Sequence record: OR805295.1
Strand: one strand, 5' to 3'
DNA length: 64,000 nt
Positions 28,295 through 59,159 of this stretch are shown piece after piece. The stretch's first letter is position 1, and each line of letters begins with the position of its first letter. Made by a program: the position numbers and the translations under genes. Under the pieces are notes generated by a model that had not been told where the DNA came from, did no database searches, and saw only the letters and a list, made by a program, of their open reading frames with translations.

Positions 28295-29969
28295 AGAATA
28301 TTATCAGTCATACGCAAAAGAATTAAAAAAGAATAATAAGAAAGAATACAATCGTATTCTTTCTTTGTATGAGCCCGTATTTGATAAATGGGTTGCATTC
28401 AAGTATTATATAGAAGGAATATCGCCGCCTGTATGTAAAGAATGTGGTAATAGAATAACTGTTTCGGCAAAACAAGCAGAATATCACACAGAATGCAAAT
28501 ATAATAAACACAAGTATTCATTTGATAAATTTATAAAATGCATAGATGATGACCAATACATATATTGTGTGTGGAATGGATATATTCCGACATCTGACAA
28601 TATAACATACAGATGCACTAAACACGGCATAATTGTTCAAAAACTTAGTTCTAGACTAAAAGGTCACAAATGCCAAAAATGTTCAGCTGAGCGTAAAGTA
28701 AGTCTAGATAACTTTAATAACTGGAAAACGCAGTGTTCTAAAATACATAATAATTTTTATGATTATTCTGTATCTACTGATTTTACATTCTTAACAAAAG
28801 ATGTATCTATTAAATGTCCAATACATGGAATATTTAAACAAAAAGCAAACGTCCATCAATCAGGTCACGGTTGTAAAAAATGCTCGTTCGAAGCTATCGG
28901 TCATAAATTATCATATGACACCGATTCTTTTATAGAAAGAAGTAATAACGTTCATAATAATTTTTATGACTATACCAAAACTATATACACTAACATTAGA
29001 GATAAAGTTGTTATAACATGTCCGATACACGGCGACTTTAACCAGATAGCATATTATCATACTGCCGGGCACGGTTGTCAGAAATGCGGTTTAGATAAAG
29101 TAGCAGAAACTACATATAGATCTAAGGCAGAAATAGAAATATTCGATTTAGTTAAATCTTATTGCTCAGATACAATTCATTCATACAATAAATTTGGGTT
29201 CGAATTAGACATATATGTTCCTAGTAAAAATCTTGCAATAGAATATAATGGACTTTATTGGCATTCTTCTAAACACATAGAAACTGATCAAAAATATAAA
29301 ACATACCATCTTGATAAAACCACTACATGTGAACAAAATAATATCCAATTATTACACATTTTCGACAACGAATGGCATACTAAAAAAGATATATGGATCT
29401 CGGTAATAAAAAATAAACTAGGTTTATCTAATAAAATATATGCAAGAAAAACAGAAATTAAAGAAGTTAAGTTCGATGATGCAAAGCAATTCGCCGAAAC
29501 GAATCATTTGCAAGGTCATGCACAATTTCGGCATGCATACGGATTGTATTATTCGGATCAATTAGTTTCTTTATTAACAATTGCAAAGCCCAGGTTTAAT
29601 AAAAATGCAAACTGGGAAATAGTAAGATTTTGTAACCTAAATAACACAAGTGTAATAGGTGGGTTTTCTAAATTATTAAAGGTAGTTTCTTGTAATTTTA
29701 CAGGCAAGATAGTATCATATGCAAATAGGCGCTGGTCTGCTGGAAACGTTTATGAAAAAAACGGATTTGCTAAAACTTCAGTAATAGCTCCTGGATTTTA
29801 TTATACTGACTTCAAAGATACATATAATAGATTATCTTTCTCTAAAGACAAGGCAAAAGTTAAATTAAAAAATTATAATAATTCAGTTAGTGTAGTAGAA
29901 AATATTTACGCAAACGGATATGGCAGGATTTGGGATTCAGGAAATATTGTTTATACAAAGGATTTATAA
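28287..29969 (+). CDS. free-standing putative homing endonuclease between the intein halves (Zn-finger repeats + Vsr-like PD-(D/E)XK + GNAT-like tail)
   Basis: Three C(P/T)xHG.....(H)..GH.C.KC repeats; ELDIYVPSKNLAIEYNGLYWHS; C-terminal SYANRRWSAGNVYEKNGF. ATG 28287 overlaps the polN stop. Confidence 0.85.
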   Translation: MNKEYYQSYAKELKKNNKKEYNRILSLYEPVFDKWVAFKYYIEGISPPVCKECGNRITVSAKQAEYHTECKYNKHKYSFDKFIKCIDDDQYIYCVWNGYIPTSDNITYRCTKHGIIVQKLSSRLKGHKCQKCSAERKVSLDNFNNWKTQCSKIHNNFYDYSVSTDFTFLTKDVSIKCPIHGIFKQKANVHQSGHGCKKCSFEAIGHKLSYDTDSFIERSNNVHNNFYDYTKTIYTNIRDKVVITCPIHGDFNQIAYYHTAGHGCQKCGLDKVAETTYRSKAEIEIFDLVKSYCSDTIHSYNKFGFELDIYVPSKNLAIEYNGLYWHSSKHIETDQKYKTYHLDKTTTCEQNNIQLLHIFDNEWHTKKDIWISVIKNKLGLSNKIYARKTEIKEVKFDDAKQFAETNHLQGHAQFRHAYGLYYSDQLVSLLTIAKPRFNKNANWEIVRFCNLNNTSVIGGFSKLLKVVSCNFTGKIVSYANRRWSAGNVYEKNGFAKTSVIAPGFYYTDFKDTYNRLSFSKDKAKVKLKNYNNSVSVVENIYANGYGRIWDSGNIVYTKDL

Positions 29970-41209: not shown

Positions 41210-41503
41210 ATGGCACGTCCAAAACCTACTATCCTTGTTGAACATGTAGATCCAAAAACATATAAATCTGAGCAAATACTCGAAGCTGAAGCTGTGTTTG
41301 CTGTATTTTATAAAGGCGAGCCTATCAATATACGGTCACAGAGTGCATTGATAGATTATGCTCCTAAATATAAGAAATCTACATTTGTTAACCCGGGCCA
41401 TGCACTTAATTTGGCTGAACGTTTAAATGAAATGTTTAAATGCACTGACTTTACTGTTCATAAATTAATTGCAGGAGAAAAATACACCGGTGAAGAATAC
41501 TAA
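41210..41503 (+). CDS. hypothetical protein
   Basis: 97-aa ORF with GGAG RBS and upstream TAAATA. Confidence 0.75.
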   Translation: MARPKPTILVEHVDPKTYKSEQILEAEAVFAVFYKGEPINIRSQSALIDYAPKYKKSTFVNPGHALNLAERLNEMFKCTDFTVHKLIAGEKYTGEEY

Positions 41504-41840
41504 GCTTAGAGATTCAATTTTCTCTTATTTAAGAGAAAATAACGAATCTTTAACTGAGTTAACAGATATAGAACTTAATCGTTTTATATTTGCACACCCT
41601 TCTAGTTTTAGACTGTCGTATGATGGTCTAAAACTATTTTCAAAACTATTCACTTCTTATACCTACCATATAGATTTTAAAATAACTTTCAGACAAAGAT
41701 TGCTATTAGGTAGGCATCTAAAATTTCCTTATTATTTTAGTGATAAAAGATTAATATTGTTTTCATACGACGATTCTTTATATTTAAATTTAATAGGCGA
41801 TATAAAGCTCTGGTTAGAATCGTTCGAACATAGTGTTTGA
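41469..41840 (+). CDS. hypothetical protein
   Basis: ORF; true start may be GTG 41490. Confidence 0.65.
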   Translation: MQEKNTPVKNTKLRDSIFSYLRENNESLTELTDIELNRFIFAHPSSFRLSYDGLKLFSKLFTSYTYHIDFKITFRQRLLLGRHLKFPYYFSDKRLILFSYDDSLYLNLIGDIKLWLESFEHSV

Positions 41841-45815: not shown

Positions 45816-47311
45816 TGGATAATTTTGATATAGAATTAAAAGAACTCATAAAAAATACAAATCCTAACGCATTAGGAAATGTAGTAAAAAGTAAAAAAGA
45901 AATATATGAGGAATTAGTTCGTCGAACTAATTCCTTTCTTCGTGACGACGTTTCTGTAACAGAAAGGATTCATATATACTTAAATCCGGCTGATAATGTT
46001 TACTGTAAGTATGATAACAAACGGACACTAAAGCGAAATAAAGATACAAAACAAACCCAATACGGATTTTGCGGAAATAAAAGTAAATGTAAATGTCATA
46101 TGGAATGGTCTTTAAAAAATCATCCAGGCATGACACAATCCGGAAAAGAAAGTATGAAAACAAAGAGGATAAAAACTTGGATAGAAAAATACGGTGTCGA
46201 TAATCCATCTAAGTCAAAAGATATTATTGCAAAACAGCAATTAAGTAAAAAACATATAAAGCCAGATCATAGAACTATAAAGGAATTGGGATATAAAAAA
46301 GTAGTAGAACGACTTTCTAACATACTCACCCCTACGTTTAGTATAGACGAGTACGAGGGGTGCTTTAGAAAAAATGTGTATGACTGGGTATGCAATGCAT
46401 GCGGAAATATAGTTATCGGACACGTAGATTATGGGTCTACTCCGAGGTGCAATGTTTGTAATCCTATAACAAAGTCTGCCGGCGAGAATGAAATATCTAA
46501 CTATATAGTATCGCTAGGATTTGATGTGATTAACAATGACCGAACTATATTATCTAACAAAGAATTAGATATAGTAATTAAAGGTACAAACATAGCAATA
46601 GAATATAATGGTTGTTATTGGCATTCTACAAAACACAGAAAAAAATCATATCATGTAGATAAATTTATAGAATGCAGAGATAAAGGAATAAAGTTAATAC
46701 AAATTTTAGATGTAGATTGGATATCAAAACAAGACATAATAAAATCAAGGTTAAAATCTATTTTAGGTTGTAGTGATAGAATATATGCAAGGAATACAAC
46801 CATAAAAGAAATAACATTTAACGAATCTTTAACTTTTTTAGAAGAAACTCACATCCAAGGTTCTTGTCAATCATCTGTAAGACTAGGTCTATACGACAAT
46901 GAGAATTTGTTAGTAGCCGTAATGACATTTGGGAAATCTAGATATACAAAAGAGGAATATGAGTTACTTAGGTATGCTAGCAAAAATACTGTTGTAGGAG
47001 GAGCCAGCAAACTTCTTAAATATTTCATAAAAACCTATTCCCCCAAATCTATCATTACATACGCAGACAGGTGCTGGTCAGATGGAAATTTATATAAACA
47101 ACTCGGGTTTACAAATGTAACTAAGAATGACAGAAATACAGGATATTGGTATATAAAAGACAACATAAAATATCATAGATCTAATTTCATAAAATCTAAG
47201 ATTTCTAATAAAAATAATTTACATCTAAGCGAATCGGAAATAATGGATAGTTTAGGTTATTTAAAATATTACGATTGCGGCAATTACAAATATACATTGC
47301 AGGTACGCTAG
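45815..47311 (+). CDS. free-standing putative homing endonuclease, same family as 28287-29969
   Basis: KYGVDNPS, two CxxC, ELDIVIKGTNIAIEYNGCYWHS, ITYADRCWSDGNLYKQLGF. TAATG coupling at 45813-45817. Confidence 0.8.
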   Translation: MDNFDIELKELIKNTNPNALGNVVKSKKEIYEELVRRTNSFLRDDVSVTERIHIYLNPADNVYCKYDNKRTLKRNKDTKQTQYGFCGNKSKCKCHMEWSLKNHPGMTQSGKESMKTKRIKTWIEKYGVDNPSKSKDIIAKQQLSKKHIKPDHRTIKELGYKKVVERLSNILTPTFSIDEYEGCFRKNVYDWVCNACGNIVIGHVDYGSTPRCNVCNPITKSAGENEISNYIVSLGFDVINNDRTILSNKELDIVIKGTNIAIEYNGCYWHSTKHRKKSYHVDKFIECRDKGIKLIQILDVDWISKQDIIKSRLKSILGCSDRIYARNTTIKEITFNESLTFLEETHIQGSCQSSVRLGLYDNENLLVAVMTFGKSRYTKEEYELLRYASKNTVVGGASKLLKYFIKTYSPKSIITYADRCWSDGNLYKQLGFTNVTKNDRNTGYWYIKDNIKYHRSNFIKSKISNKNNLHLSESEIMDSLGYLKYYDCGNYKYTLQVR

Positions 47312-53392: not shown

Positions 53393-54344
53393 TTGTTTTT
53401 CTTTTTCCTTTGCCTGTAGATAAAATATACATAAAATATTCTTCGTTATTTTTTAATTCAGGATACATCTTAAACATTTCTGACCAACTAGTTTTTGTTA
53501 ATTTTTCGAGATGCTTAGGTACTATAGGCTTAAAGGTTGTTGTATATTTCTTAGCAAATGCCACTAAGTTAGCACCTGTAAACGGAGTGCCGTGTACAAA
53601 TTCTTTAGAAGAAAGTTCATCCGATATATCGTTTTCGTTAATTTCAAAAAAGTTAACAATATTGTATACATCAGATTTAGAAATGTACCTATTTTTTATT
53701 ATATCGTTTTTTATTGTATCTAAAGTAAATATTTGCTTAAGATCGTTTACTGTATCTAAAGCATATTTAGGACACAATTTATTAGACTTATTAAAGTCAG
53801 ATACTGTATGTTTAATTGCTGGCGGCAAATGGTAATAATACGAAAATGAATTATAAGTAAATACGAGATTTGCCATACTACACAGACGTTTAATATGTTT
53901 ATCTATTACATTGGCATATAATTTATCATAATTTTTATATGTTTTTAAATTATGTAAATCAGACATATGTATTTTATTTAAACACAGCATCAATGGAATA
54001 CAGTCACTGTACCTAGCTGCCACATTATTTACAATAGGTTTACTGTTGAATTTAGATTTAAACTCATTAATTATTTTTTCATTAAACAAAATAGTAATGT
54101 CTTTTATAAGAAATTCATGCAATGCTCTGCATAACCCATCAAACTGTGTACTATTCTTAAATGCATAAAGACTAGTAGATAAATTATCATTGTTAAAAAA
54201 CGATGATAATGCATAGTGTGCATCTGATGAATGTTCTAACGGTATGTCATATCTAATAGAACTTTCTAATATATATTCTATATCGTTTCGTTCTACCGAA
54301 TTCCAGTCAATTTGTGATAACATGTGTGATACTGATTTTTTCAT
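53385..54344 (-). CDS. helical hypothetical protein, paralog family member 2
   Basis: 319 aa; C-terminus WSEMFKMYPEL...LSTGKG. Confidence 0.65.
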   Translation of the reverse strand: MKKSVSHMLSQIDWNSVERNDIEYILESSIRYDIPLEHSSDAHYALSSFFNNDNLSTSLYAFKNSTQFDGLCRALHEFLIKDITILFNEKIINEFKSKFNSKPIVNNVAARYSDCIPLMLCLNKIHMSDLHNLKTYKNYDKLYANVIDKHIKRLCSMANLVFTYNSFSYYYHLPPAIKHTVSDFNKSNKLCPKYALDTVNDLKQIFTLDTIKNDIIKNRYISKSDVYNIVNFFEINENDISDELSSKEFVHGTPFTGANLVAFAKKYTTTFKPIVPKHLEKLTKTSWSEMFKMYPELKNNEEYFMYILSTGKGKRKTNE

Positions 54345-55237
54345 TAGTTTCGGGGACCTTTAAGTTTTGCTAGTACATGTTGTTCTGACCCAGCCAAATG
54401 AGGGAAGATCTTTATAAGTTTGTTCCAGTACGAATACGGCAAAAAATCGAGATTTATATAATCTAAATATTTTATAGAATTACTATGCAACCTATTCCTC
54501 GAAAGTATAGTCAATATATGTCGTCCTGCTATATAAGACCAATCTATATTTTTAAGAAATGTAATACAACTGTCAGTAGACATTGTCTGACCATTTGCTT
54601 TATGCATATAGAATAGCGAAGACATCCTTTCAAAAAGAAACCAGTGATATTGTTTATTTTTAGAAATAGTATCAAACCCTACAAATTTTACATATTCTTC
54701 AAAAACAGAATATCTTTTACTACAAAAAAAATTAAATACTCTTTTATTCAACAAAACGTTATGTCGTTTTAATTCTTTTAAAATAAGTCTTACTATGTTT
54801 AAATCAGGTAAAGATTGTATGGTACACAATTGCGTTATTATATCTTTAGATAATGCTTTTCTCGGTTTTAAATTCTTTAAAACAACATAAAATAATTTAT
54901 GACATGTTATAGGAACTTTCATAGGAAACATTGAATTTGAAAATTTTCCAATACATTGCCTGACAAGATATAAATCTTCTTTACTTATAGATCTGTTATA
55001 TTCACTAATAGAAGATGAATAATTACTTGATATAAAGTTTATTAATTTTGGACTTTTAATTTCCATAAGAACATTCAATACAGTAGCATTGAACGGTATA
55101 TATTCAACGTCAATAGAATTACAGACTGCAATTAGTGCATCTTTAGCTGAATTATTAGCAATTGTTATTTCTTTATTTTTTCTAAATTTAATAAAATATT
55201 CTAATTCGCCTAAAGCTTTAATATAGCTAATATCCAT
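54344..55237 (-). CDS. helical hypothetical protein, paralog family member 1
   Basis: 297 aa; C-terminus WNKLIKIFPHL...LAKLKG. Confidence 0.65.
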   Translation of the reverse strand: MDISYIKALGELEYFIKFRKNKEITIANNSAKDALIAVCNSIDVEYIPFNATVLNVLMEIKSPKLINFISSNYSSSISEYNRSISKEDLYLVRQCIGKFSNSMFPMKVPITCHKLFYVVLKNLKPRKALSKDIITQLCTIQSLPDLNIVRLILKELKRHNVLLNKRVFNFFCSKRYSVFEEYVKFVGFDTISKNKQYHWFLFERMSSLFYMHKANGQTMSTDSCITFLKNIDWSYIAGRHILTILSRNRLHSNSIKYLDYINLDFLPYSYWNKLIKIFPHLAGSEQHVLAKLKGPRN

Positions 55238-55263
55238 ACGTATACCGTAAAAATTTTTACCAT

Positions 55264-55292
55264 ACTATAAAATATGTATATTCAATAGTCAA
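55264..55292 (-). promoter_or_regulatory. sigma70-type promoter (leftward)
   Basis: TTGACT-17 bp-TATAGT on the minus strand. Confidence 0.7.
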
Positions 55293-55326
55293 CTGTGTTT
55301 GGTAACAAAATGTGGTAATTAGGCAC

Positions 55327-55355
55327 TTGACATTGGTATTGTCTTTTAGTAAACT
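55327..55355 (+). promoter_or_regulatory. sigma70-type promoter (rightward, no ORF downstream)
   Basis: TTGACA-17 bp-TAAACT. Confidence 0.7.
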
Positions 55356-55361
55356 GTGCGC

Positions 55362-56110
55362 TTGCGTAAGAAATGTATATACGATAGTGCTATATGTATA
55401 TACAGACAAGTGGCTCTGTTCCATTATTGGATATTGGTAGTAGAAACTATCCCCATCGTGCTGTTAATGTAGTTCCGATAGTGTCGGGTTAACGTTTTAA
55501 CAGTTATTTAAATTATGATTTTGGGTGCCACAGAGATTGTACTTACTAAAAGGACTTAGTAAGAACCGCATATAATCTCGAAACTTGTGTAGGATGTTGG
55601 TCTAACCACGGCATAGAATATATGCCTCAACTACTACACGGAAAGGATGATGCTCTGGTTGAAACAGAGTTTCTATAAATCTTTCAGTATAGATTCCGCA
55701 TGACTGAAAGTTGAAACACCAACATCAATAGACTATAGTTTTTGTTAGTGTGGCTATAGTTTATTCCGGCATTGAAAGTATATACAGTGATGCGAGACAG
55801 TAAGCATTAGTAGCAACTGTATATATGAGTAAGAGGATGCGTTTACAATGAGGAATTACCTATCGGTGCCCGCCTCAGGGATTGCACTTCCCAACGTACA
55901 CTAAACTTCGTACCATACCGAAACATACGTTTCTGTTATTACGATTTCCTTCCCAAACGGGGAGGAAATCTTCTCCGCCCGAATATCATAAGATCAAAAG
56001 CATTAATAATTAATATATAAAATTCGTTTAATTAGTTATTAAGTATATGAGTTGTAGTTTACGAAAACGAATATACTTAATAACTACCAGTGAAGCTTGC
56101 TTCGCTGTTT
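55362..56110 (+). ncRNA. candidate large structured non-coding RNA (~750 nt), family unassigned
   Basis: No ORF of 60 aa or more in the track; at least 10 stems including a long-range 8-bp pair (55593-55600 with 55719-55726); G-U wobbles favour the + strand; dedicated promoter upstream. Confidence 0.6.
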
Positions 56111-56202
56111 AAAATTGCAATTTGTATTTTCAATTTTATATTTTGAAATGTGTTTTTGAAAATCAATCTATAAAATATAATTTTAAATATTATTTTTAAA
56201 TG

Positions 56203-56289
56203 TCATTTTGTGATTTTAATTTAAAATACTATTTCATGATTTAAAATAGAAATATATTAAACAATATCATTTTGTGATTTTAATTTAAA
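56203..56289. repeat. 23-bp AT-rich direct repeat x2
   Basis: tcattttgtgattttaatttaaa at 56203-56225 and 56267-56289. Confidence 0.85.
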
Positions 56290-56340
56290 CAATTTCATAT
56301 AAAACTATTTTGTCTATTTCTTTTATAATCTTAAAGTCAT

Positions 56341-56370
56341 TAAAAACCCTACATTTGTAGGGTTTTTATT
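56341..56370. terminator. bidirectional-type terminator hairpin
   Basis: taaaaaccctaca-tt-tgtagggtttttatt. Confidence 0.8.
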
Positions 56371-57049
56371 TGATTATATGGTATTCGGTTCTAGATATTC
56401 AGATTATAATTAATAACATCTGTATGATAACTATATTTTACAGAAATACATTTACTAATTACATTTGTCAATAAATGGTTATTTTTCTTTATATATTTAA
56501 TACGTCTCAGAGGTATATAGCAAATATGATAAATCGAGGCACATAATATTTGTGTCTATATTTTTTAGTTTTATTACTCTACATAATCTATTATTGATGT
56601 ATACAGTTATATACGCTATGATGTAATAACAAACCAAATTATATAGAGAATATACATTAAACTCTGTTTTGTGTTAAATCGACACTACATATATTATTAT
56701 ATATTGATACCTGCTGTATATAAAACTAATTAGTTATTATGTGCTTTAGAAGAATTCCATTATAATTAGTTTTCTGTGTCATATTCAAATGATGAAAGAA
56801 TATAATTCTTTCATCTATTTTATTATATGTTATTCAAGATTTATAATATAATTTTATAATGTTTGTAATTTATGACACAAGCTATTTTAATAGAATTATA
56901 CTATTCAAAGTTTTGACTTATTTTATGTGTAAAACGACAAAAATAGGCATATATATAAAAAGCACACCTGTTTCCTGTATGAAACAAAATAGTATTTTAT
57001 TAAAAATAGTGTATAGTAGTAAAAACATCATTAATCATGCACGTAATTT

Positions 57050-57271
57050 ATGGTAAACGTAATTAAAGAACTTCCGCCCATTAAAGGATATTGCATAGTT
57101 GTGCGTCATCCAGGCGATACTAGATTTAGCTGGGTATCGCTAGACGATCAATATATGCTGGTAGACAATCCAGTAGTTTTAAATGATGAATTTGACAATT
57201 GTAAAAACGAATGGCCGGATGCTGAAATAAAAATAGTAGAAGTATATATTGTCCCGGAGAAGGTGTTATGA
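57050..57271 (+). CDS. small hypothetical protein, paralog A
   Basis: Ends IVEVYIVPEKVL. Confidence 0.65.
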   Translation: MVNVIKELPPIKGYCIVVRHPGDTRFSWVSLDDQYMLVDNPVVLNDEFDNCKNEWPDAEIKIVEVYIVPEKVL

Positions 57272-57995: not shown

Positions 57996-59159
57996 ATGAG
58001 TCAGATGTACGTAACTATCACTAACGGAATGTACCGTAACCAGCAAGTAAACGGCACATTCCTTTTACTTGAAGATGTGAAAGTTACTGGGTCGGGAAAA
58101 CGAGTTATTAACGTATTAGGCGCATTGCCGGAATGGTCTCAACATAAATGTAGAGTTACACTCGGTAATGACGCAACAGTACAGTATTCGAACGAACAAG
58201 GAGAGGTTTTAGATTTGCCTAATGTTATACGTCCGTTTGTGGGCGAAAATAATAATAATAATAATAATGTTCCTGCATCTAGTCGCGGTACAGTGTATGA
58301 AGGCACCGCAGTAGAAATTGACTACGAAAAGCAATACCAACAGCTAGAATCCGAAAACGATGCAATGAATCGTATCAAACGGACTTTTGAGATTGTAAAT
58401 GAACTAACAGAGGCTGCCGCGGCAGGCGAAATCCGTTCTATGATCATCTCTGGTCCTCCCGGAATCGGAAAAAGCTTCGGTGTAGAAGAAACACTAAACA
58501 GGTGTTTCTTGTTAGATAAAATTAAAGATAATAAAGAACCGTTTGAGATCGTGAAGGGCGCTGCAAGTGCAATTGGTGTTTACCAAAAGCTTTACGAATT
58601 TAAAGATAAAGGTAAAATCCTTATTTTCGATGATTGCGACCGCGTACTATTTGACGAAGATAGTCTAAATCTCCTTAAAGGTGCATTAGATACTACTAAG
58701 CGTAGAACTATTTACTGGCTTAGTGAGTCCCGCGTTTTAAAAGAAAATGATATTCCACCTAAATTCGATTTCGAAGGTAGTGTAATTTTCCTTACTAACC
58801 TTAACTTCGAGGATACAAAGTCCCGAATTGGAAGGCACCTAGAAGCAATTATGTCCCGGTGTCATTATTTAGACATGGAAATTAGTAGTACGAGAGACCA
58901 GATCCTTCGTATTAAACAAGTTGTGCGCGACGGGATGCTTAGTAAATATGAATTTAATAACGGAGAAGATGAAGAAATCCTAGAATATATTATCGATAAT
59001 CAGAATGATCTGCGAGAACTTAGCTTGCGTATGGTAATTAAAATTGCCGATCTGATTAAATTCAAAAAAGATGGTTGGCGAGAATATGCAGAGACAACTG
59101 TACTGAAACGGAATGCAAAATTCCGGCGGCTGTATAACGAAAAGTACAGTGATATTTAA
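57996..59159 (+). CDS. phage AAA+ ATPase
   Basis: ISGPPGIGKS (Walker A), ILIFDDCD (Walker B), IFLTN, AIMSRC. Poly-Asn linker. Confidence 0.85.
   Translation: MSQMYVTITNGMYRNQQVNGTFLLLEDVKVTGSGKRVINVLGALPEWSQHKCRVTLGNDATVQYSNEQGEVLDLPNVIRPFVGENNNNNNNVPASSRGTVYEGTAVEIDYEKQYQQLESENDAMNRIKRTFEIVNELTEAAAAGEIRSMIISGPPGIGKSFGVEETLNRCFLLDKIKDNKEPFEIVKGAASAIGVYQKLYEFKDKGKILIFDDCDRVLFDEDSLNLLKGALDTTKRRTIYWLSESRVLKENDIPPKFDFEGSVIFLTNLNFEDTKSRIGRHLEAIMSRCHYLDMEISSTRDQILRIKQVVRDGMLSKYEFNNGEDEEILEYIIDNQNDLRELSLRMVIKIADLIKFKKDGWREYAETTVLKRNAKFRRLYNEKYSDI
58248..58268 (+). repeat. (AAT)7 in-frame microsatellite encoding N7
   Basis: aataataataataataataat. Confidence 0.9.

Follow-up and report, generated by a model that had tools for sequence, protein, structure and literature searches.

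Four transcribed regions that lack open reading frames (ORFs) and known promoters have been reported in the Pseudomonas jumbo phage PA5oct (Lood et al. 2020, PMC7318152), and ncRNA004 of this phage accounted for 0.08, 0.03 and 0.02% of phage reads at 5, 15 and 25 min of infection by directional RNA sequencing (RNA-Seq) (PMC7318152, Table 1). The published annotation of ncRNA004 consists of coordinates and read shares, with no analysis of promoter, fold, conservation or function (PMC7318152). Comparable ORF-free transcripts include lnc001 and lnc002 of phage K and other long non-coding RNAs recovered from phages by RNA-Seq, at least one of which has its own early promoter, and the GOLLD and ROOL RNAs, which typically adjoin tRNAs and are abundantly transcribed (PMC9241854). 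Here we analyse a stretch of 64,000 nucleotides (nt) from sequence record OR805295.1, referred to as the window and used for all coordinates unless stated otherwise, and describe an RNA at positions 55374-55992 on its plus strand. This RNA is very probably the ortholog of ncRNA004 and a stand-alone non-coding RNA gene of the Wroclawvirus jumbo phages.

A probable ortholog of PA5oct ncRNA004

The window comes from a PA5oct-like Pseudomonas jumbo phage. By blastn, positions 55250-56400 are 100% identical to phages Deifobo and Paride and 98.5-99% identical to nine more Wroclawvirus records, giving 11 records in all. Wroclawvirus, whose type phage is vB_PaeM_PA5oct, is the only genus of the family Arenbergviridae. 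PA5oct matches the window on the plus strand with 98.9% identity over 1150 nt, including five substitutions in the 749 nt of the RNA region, and keeps the same flanks at the same divergent junction: a leftward gene of 297 amino acids (aa) on one side, and rightward small genes and an ATPase gene on the other. At this place the PA5oct record carries the GenBank feature "putative lncRNA; ncRNA004; Annotation based on RNA-Seq data" (locus EST35_0353, MK797984 246116..246734, plus strand), which maps to window positions 55374-55992, a length of about 620 nt. Sequence, strand and flanking genes all agree, and we regard the two as the same gene, with nothing essential that differs.

A first-pass annotation of this DNA, made from the letters alone, had proposed a transcribed, plus-strand, non-coding phage RNA of about 750 nt that was possibly undescribed. 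The directional RNA-Seq annotation in PA5oct settles the transcribed strand and bears out the non-coding call, with a shorter RNA of about 620 nt than proposed. The suggestion of novelty did not survive: the transcript was published as ncRNA004 in 2020 and is annotated in GenBank, so the feature itself is not new. Our own contributions are an assigned promoter, a domain model, evidence from strand-specific substitution patterns, and membership tests against other families that came out negative. In the phage of the window, transcription is to be expected from the 98.9-100% identity, which extends to invariant promoter hexamers.

Phage reads made up 21, 69 and 92% of all reads in PA5oct infections at 5, 15 and 25 min (10.1101/406421). 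When the ncRNA004 read share is multiplied by this phage fraction, its fall among phage reads is offset by the rise of the phage fraction, and the share of total RNA comes out roughly flat at 0.017-0.021%, a figure that is our arithmetic rather than a measurement. The flat share fits either an RNA made from the start of infection that then persists or continuous synthesis at a low rate.

The region was confirmed to be free of ORFs, the longest stop-free stretch in any frame being 68 codons, with 12-23 stops per frame. Reading any single stop codon as sense opened no long plus-strand ORF, and six-frame translated pieces of the region matched no Pfam or PHROG family. A hidden or decayed protein gene was ruled out on these two grounds.

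Promoter and transcript ends

The promoter scan placed a sigma-70-type promoter, TTGACA-17-TAAACT (10/12 matches), at 55327-55355 on the plus strand, with a predicted start near 55362. It ends 19 nt before the RNA-Seq 5' end at 55374, and hexamers, spacing and distance are all those of a sigma-70 unit. Both hexamers are invariant in 17 copies, and the spacer carries three substitutions (55333, 55335 and 55337). PA5oct promoters have been reported as TTGAC / TATAATA (10.1101/406421). The proposal that the RNA has its own promoter therefore holds as regards the presence of a site and its plausible position and conservation, but the pattern is statistically unremarkable, with 5 matches in the window against 4.4 expected by chance. 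Back to back with this promoter, the scan and the gene layout place a divergent one, TTGACT-17-TATAGT (55264-55292, minus strand), for the leftward 297-aa ORFan gene (54344-55237).

At the other end of the RNA, the terminator scan called no canonical intrinsic terminator at 55992 or 56110, and the 3' end therefore probably arises by processing or at a weak non-canonical site. Going downstream, a canonical intrinsic terminator is first met at 56341-56368 and is bidirectional (A-tract, 12-bp stem, T-tract); its loop bases 56353-56 differ between phages while the stem is preserved, and weak Rfam matches there correspond to generic terminator hairpins. Upstream of it, the stem check, the minimum free energy (MFE) structure and RNAalifold all point to a conserved 3' trailer at 56033-56107 on the plus strand, not called by the terminator scan, that would comprise two hairpins: an A/U-rich hairpin of 16 bp plus a 3-bp extension (56033-86), and one of 7-8 bp with a U-G pair (56090-107) followed by GUUUAAAAUU. 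Positions 56033-56143 are invariant in all copies, though both 3' hairpins lie outside the RNA-Seq annotation. Because these hairpins lie in an invariant block, a longer primary transcript is possible; it may exceed the stable RNA, and the trailer's membership in the mature RNA is uncertain.

Predicted architecture of the RNA

Folding was scored against dinucleotide shuffles on both strands. The region 55362-56110 reached z = -7.6 on the plus strand (-215 kcal/mol) and -3.75 on the minus strand (-187 kcal/mol), and the RNA itself (55374-55992) gave -5.4 and -2.7, respectively. As anticipated in the first-pass annotation, the region thus folds better than its shuffles, and better on the plus than on the minus strand. 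A 640-nt plus-strand tile at 55362 (z = -7.1) ranked third of the 99 tiles in the window (background -2.1, standard deviation 2.0), behind two tiles that hold a terminator cluster and a 171-nt tandem repeat. We take the thermodynamic support for a fold to be real but moderate.

All ten stems on which the original RNA call had been based are present at their positions, eight of them perfect and two (55652-57/55665-70 and 55943-54/55959-70) with one plus-strand G-U wobble each, and the MFE, centroid and RNAalifold structures concur on most hairpins. The region is also GC-richer than its flanks, as had been noted (0.36-0.40 across 55300-56050; left flank 0.24-0.28, right flank 0.18-0.26), and the remarked repetition of GAAA proved to be a three-fold enrichment (10 copies against 3.05 +/- 1.5 expected), with most copies in predicted junctions.

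The RNAalifold consensus has the plus strand beginning with a 5' region (55384-55504) of four local hairpins at 55384-55419, 55420-31, 55436-51 and 55460-55504. An alternative hairpin, UGUAUAUAC/GUAUAUACA (55374-82/55396-404), competes with the one at 55384-55419 and is the one used by the centroid structure. Wobble-compatible variants fall in this region at 55423 and 55437. Next comes a predicted long-range helix of 14 bp, absent from the earlier list of stems, in which the plus-strand segment UUAUGAUUUUGGGU (55513-55526; MFE, centroid and RNAalifold) would pair with GCCCGAAUAUCAUAA (55977-55991; RNAalifold and centroid). The 3' strand of this helix ends where the RNA-Seq 3' end lies (55992), and the helix (55513-26/55977-91) would close a multi-helix domain of about 480 nt. 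The variant 55985 A>G preserves its pair as U-G; by our estimate, a helix of this kind could statistically arise by chance.

The enclosed plus-strand core domain (55527-55976) is predicted to hold about ten helices on the combined evidence of the stem check, MFE, RNAalifold and centroid structures, among them the stems 55542/55556, 55610/55621, 55652/55665, 55681/55703, 55779/55816 and 55943/55959. Its junctions are GAAA-rich, and nine wobble-compatible substitutions fall on its predicted pairs. The structures differ over one part of the core, where the centroid has 55593-600/55719-26 and the MFE structure prefers 55585-92/55634-41. The former had been put forward in the first-pass annotation as the closure of a multibranch domain, a proposal that is upheld by the centroid and not by the MFE fold. 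The transversion 55588 T>G disrupts the MFE helix and is unpaired in the centroid alternative, and therefore favours the 55593-600/55719-26 closure.

The self-complementary sequence TGTATATACA is clustered at 55275, 55374, 55395, 55778, 55817 and 56715, giving two hairpins with nearly identical stem sequence. These copies could permit alternative or intermolecular pairing, or be protein-binding sites on DNA.

Conservation and substitution pattern

An alignment of 12 copies, from nine GenBank phages, two ENA contigs and one Logan metagenome contig, contained 25 variable sites in 749 nt; the near-identical ENA and Logan copies contributed only four new ones. Between the window and PA5oct, the RNA differs at 4 positions per 500 nt, compared with 48 and 24 in the adjoining downstream spacer and 3-13 in most nearby genes. 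In these jumbo phages the RNA is under purifying selection.

When the 25 substitutions were scored on the plus-strand structure, 12 were pair-compatible (nearly all A-U to G-U), 4 disruptive and 9 unpaired, whereas a strand-symmetric null of random re-placement predicts 6.4, 8.3 and 10.3, respectively (P = 0.008 for at least 12 compatible; P = 0.043 for at most 4 disruptive). Scoring the same sites on the minus strand gave 6 compatible and 10 disruptive changes. In addition, A<->G exchanges outnumber C<->U exchanges by 14 to 5 in the RNA but not in the flanks (65 to 83; p = 0.008), and the count of extra pair types was 12 on the structure versus 1-4 with pairing partners slid. Together, these patterns are suggestive of a conserved plus-strand fold, though not proof of it.

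Downstream of the RNA, positions 56230-57050 form a hypervariable spacer of 18-24% GC with several indels between near-identical phages. Variable columns make up 7% of 56110-56400, 18% of 56400-56700 and about 12% over 56110-56700, several-fold above the RNA or the genes. A 27-nt direct repeat, AAT[G/A]TCATTTTGTGATTTTAATTTAAA, unique in the window, occurs in two copies 64 nt apart (56199-56225 and 56263-56289). The copies are almost invariant, with six variable sites in the intervening 37 nt, and overlap promoter-like matches; possibly they serve to regulate the rightward genes. Four independent public assemblies of this phage (Logan contigs L013, L015, L017 and L019) break within 14 nt of one another, at ends corresponding to 55442-55455 in the 5' part of the RNA, and one more assembly breaks in the 16-bp hairpin at 56073. 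These breaks are most simply explained as an assembly effect of the polymorphic sites at 55423-55467 and of palindromes.

Comparison with known RNA families

The first-pass annotation had been unable to assign a family, and our searches lead to the same position. A scan with Rfam 15, which took in GOLLD, ROOL, HEARO, OLE, RNase P, tmRNA, 6S, group I/II introns, CrcZ and RsmY/Z, gave no match in the window at gathering thresholds and none in 55350-56010 at E<=10; what weak matches there are in 55200-56400 at E<=10 come from sequences resembling terminators or hairpins, all outside the RNA. A sensitive blastn search of 50,697 phage records found nothing beyond the 11 Wroclawvirus records. The DNA-pattern search of IMG/VR returned chance hits only, a 22-mer search of JGI metagenomes gave no match, and no match to back-translated stop-free pieces turned up in metagenomes, IMG/VR or GTDB genomes. 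Apparent paralogs within the genome ("3 places per record") were rejected as self-hits of two hairpins.

GOLLD and ROOL, known from phages and prophages of Firmicutes and other hosts, had been named for comparison. The analogy stands as far as size class (about 600 nt), phage carriage, non-coding character and multiplicity of helices are concerned, but membership does not, as there is no sequence or structure match at E<=10. The setting also differs: the 64-kb window contains no tRNA gene, the read share is 0.02-0.08% of phage reads, and records of the RNA are confined to one phage genus. Phage K lnc001 and lnc002 resemble the window RNA in being ORF-free transcripts found by infection transcriptomics; unlike it, they are highly abundant and tRNA-associated, and they belong to unrelated phages and sequences.

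The neighbouring genes offered one path to other phages. Both the 297-aa and the 319-aa neighbour are genus-level ORFans and give no synteny route to relatives. The rightward 387-aa gene at 57996-59159 encodes a protein homologous, at about 30% identity and 95% coverage, to T4 NrdC.10 and to P-loop ATPases in more than 1,300 phage records; this NrdC.10-like ATPase is widespread in T4-like phages, where it has no conserved context. In PA5oct it is labelled "thioredoxin", which looks like annotation carry-over.

A structured RNA of 121Q/GAP32-like jumbo phages

While inspecting the DNA upstream of homologs of the 387-aa gene in two distantly related jumbo phages, we met a second conserved ORF-free element. 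In Erwinia phage pEa_SNUABM_44 it occupies a 650-nt ORF-free gap that is found with 68-100% identity in 62 records, including Eneladusvirus, Mimasvirus (GAP32, CBB, XbC2), Asteriusvirus (121Q, PBECO4, UE-S1), Salmonella SD-* and other phages. The RNA of about 500 nt lies at L024:2903-3396 in pEa_SNUABM_44 and at L025:19960-20449 in UE-S1, and also in sequences L026-L034. It begins at a conserved TGnTATAAT promoter, and a consensus built from 11 representatives has 97 pairs, 36 of them with compensatory double changes. It had no Rfam match at E<=1, and the papers searched did not mention it. We regard it as a well-supported structured RNA, and as what seems to be a large RNA family not described before. 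A phage sigma-factor gene precedes it in 121Q and UE-S1. The 4-5 matching places per record could reflect short repeats of promoter or terminator motifs instead of paralogs.

PA5oct has been reported as a distant relative of these jumbo phages (10.1101/406421), and by eye the two RNAs resemble each other in their own promoter in an ORF-free gap and, as predicted, in a body of about 480 nt, paired ends and a 3' hairpin. They differ in that the family has its 36 compensatory pairs and long invariant motifs, and the window RNA shares no detectable sequence with it. An nhmmer profile of the family (--max) gave no hit in 55300-56100 at E<=100, and pairwise alignment of the window RNA to the family scored 177.5, no improvement on shuffled sequence (160 +/- 14). 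We also built covariance models of the 3' domain (R1) and the 5' domain (R2), covering the two outer thirds, and searched 1.2 kb with filters off: R1 reached 7.2 bits on the plus strand (E = 0.15) and 10.8 bits on the wrong strand, and R2 had no plus-strand hit. The invariant family motifs AGAAGAAACCCG, CACGGCAAUGCGGC and GAUAGACAUAUAAG are absent from the window RNA. The profile, alignment and covariance-model tests do not support membership of the window RNA, and because homology is undetectable we do not file it in the family; an analogy between the two is possible.

The other three annotated RNAs of PA5oct, ncRNA001-003, have no similarity to the window RNA, no meaningful Rfam match and no match to R1 or R2. 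Two of them, ncRNA003 (L022:366-969) and ncRNA002 (L021:352-802), are GC-rich islands (up to 0.49-0.57) in A+T-rich ORF-free gaps, and ncRNA003 likewise lies directly after a leftward structural gene.

Proposed mechanism and alternative explanations

We propose that host sigma-70 RNA polymerase would initiate near 55362 from TTGACA-17-TAAACT and yield a stable plus-strand product that ends near 55992 and encodes no protein. The product would fold into a 5' arm of local hairpins followed by the domain of about 480 nt that the 14-bp helix is predicted to close, with the 3' end of this helix forming the 3' end of the RNA. Probably made from the earliest stage of infection and persisting thereafter, the RNA may act through its fold and in trans, as a protein-binding scaffold or as a decoy for a host or phage factor, and presumably neither by antisense pairing nor as an mRNA; searches of the window and of the rest of these phage genomes gave no antisense target above about 20 nt. 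The scaffold or decoy mechanism taken by itself is tentative and rather more apt to be wrong than right. The explanation as a whole, an ncRNA004 ortholog that is an RNA gene and works as a folded, trans-acting scaffold or decoy, is in our judgement slightly better than an even prospect.

Several points weigh against this explanation. None of the 226 predicted pairs shows a compensatory double change, since identity among the known copies never drops below 98.5%, and covariation therefore gives no proof of the fold. The substitution tests relied on a structure predicted from the same sequences, a bias in their favour, which is why we treat them as suggestive. Arbitrary 200-nt windows inside the RNA fold in an ordinary way (-0.2 to -3.9 versus -0.9 +/- 1.5), and the hairpin loops read off the RNAalifold structure include no GNRA tetraloop. 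The read density of ncRNA004 is below the genome average, which is unusual for a scaffold or sponge RNA, and its 5' and 3' ends derive from read coverage rather than end mapping.

Some of these points would equally suit a decaying remnant, that is, a dead gene or mobile-element fossil with low incidental transcription, whose stems are ordinary for a 600-nt sequence of such composition. The low read share, a GC content of 0.36-0.40 that resembles phage coding DNA, the missing covariation, the ordinary 200-nt z-scores and the two other tiles that fold at least as well are all compatible with decay. Yet no frame retains a trace of a reading frame or protein similarity, the RNA is several-fold better conserved than the adjoining spacer and on par with genes, its substitutions are skewed towards changes that preserve plus-strand pairs, and the transcribed strand folds markedly better, so that we consider a remnant improbable. 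Similarly improbable, and if anything slightly more so, is a function at the level of DNA or of transcription itself, either as a divergent-promoter control region with operator-like TGTATATACA palindromes or as an origin-type element, modelled on ColE1 RNA II and the T4 ori transcripts, that primes or opens an A+T-rich stretch. Three of the four exact copies of GTATATAC in the 64 kb lie inside the RNA (0.04 expected), two of them 21 nt apart just past its start, and a degenerate copy of the palindrome, TGTATATTCA, sits in the spacer of the leftward divergent promoter; a stretch of 18-24% GC with two conserved 27-nt repeats follows downstream, ncRNA004 expression is low and early, and a phage RNase H-like gene has been reported (PMC7318152). 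Against operators, five copies carry 55784 A>G, which abolishes the palindrome but leaves the RNA pair intact as G-U, and conservation spans the whole 750 nt, well beyond the motifs. Against an origin, cumulative GC skew tracks gene orientation and shows nothing resembling an origin apart from the strand switch, and the A+T-rich stretch is hypervariable, carries indels, and begins about 750 nt from the promoter, past the conserved hairpins.

The comparison with the ~500-nt RNA of 121Q/PBECO4, GAP32/CBB and Eneladusvirus raises another alternative, that the window RNA belongs to that family as a highly diverged member or is its analogue in function. Besides the relatedness of the phages (10.1101/406421), the ORF-free setting, the own promoters and the body of about 480 nt closed by end-to-end pairing, both RNAs are predicted to have a UUUCC..CCC / GGG..GGAAA hairpin right before the 3' strand of the closing helix, and the family RNA of L024 lies about 6.4 kb upstream of its NrdC.10-like ATPase gene, the window RNA about 2 kb upstream of its own. 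With no significant plus-strand match from profile, pairwise alignment or R1/R2 models, and with AGAAGAAACCCG, CACGGCAAUGCGGC and GAUAGACAUAUAAG missing, we judge this less probable again than decay or a DNA-level function. That the RNA instead works through short linear motifs, as a precursor of small base-pairing RNAs or as a sponge that sequesters RsmA/CsrA-type proteins through GGA, seems very improbable. AGGAUG does occur three times (GGAUG 3 versus 0.53 expected, P = 0.015), one copy in a predicted single-stranded junction, and one AAGGAC occupies the loop of the perfect 8-bp hairpin at 55542-63; but the motif was picked after looking, GGA itself is unenriched (only 10 in 640 nt, P = 0.2), the RNA is of low abundance, and no Rfam small-RNA family matches it. 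Known Rsm/Csr sponges are far denser in GGA than the window RNA. We give hardly any credence to the idea that the RNA is a messenger for one or several very short proteins. ORFs of 30-51 codons are annotated here in some records, and automatic annotation of phages Cassandra, PAC2 and Ettore lists three to six tiny coding sequences, but these differ between records, have no family matches and are lacking in the RNA-Seq-annotated PA5oct; in the 43-codon ORF at 55882-56013, 6 of the 7 substitutions fall at codon positions 1 and 2, which is not how coding sequence varies, and no Shine-Dalgarno sequence was seen before the candidate starts.

Other features of the window

The strongest local folding in the window (z = -9.3, 200-nt tile) is at 41462-41661 on the plus strand and comes from two long hairpins, AGAGAAAA../..TTTTCTCT and TAGTTTTAGAC../..GTCTAAAACTA, which lie mostly inside the ORF 41469-41840, the first arm being just upstream of the ORF start. 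Between 6226 and 15447, in the region of two ORFs of 2236 and 1006 aa, about 20 dispersed copies of a 58-nt unit occur together with longer repeats of 87-171 nt, suggesting that a peptide module recurs within very large proteins that are probably fibre-like. Positions 29202-29465 and 46562-46810, 17.3 kb apart, are 71-76% identical, which suggests paralogous genes, possibly homing-endonuclease-like.

Implications

To our knowledge, only a handful of non-coding RNAs above 500 nt have been described in bacteria or phages. Those that are understood are ribozymes, cores of ribonucleoproteins (RNPs) or self-assembling particles. For these reasons, an orphan RNA of 620 nt under purifying selection in such phages is a reasonable target for study. 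PA5oct-type phages are candidates for phage therapy and belong to a clinically used group, so their uncharacterised genes matter for knowing what such phages carry. The 121Q/GAP32-like family may be the more useful lead, having both covariation support and enough sequence diversity for structure work. Although we think it unlikely, ncRNA004 may found a new class of large, intricately folded phage RNAs, as a ribozyme, an RNP core or a self-assembling particle, and might be the Pseudomonas-phage counterpart of the 121Q/GAP32-like RNA. If that were true, large structured RNAs would be a general and so far unrecognised component of this jumbo-phage lineage.

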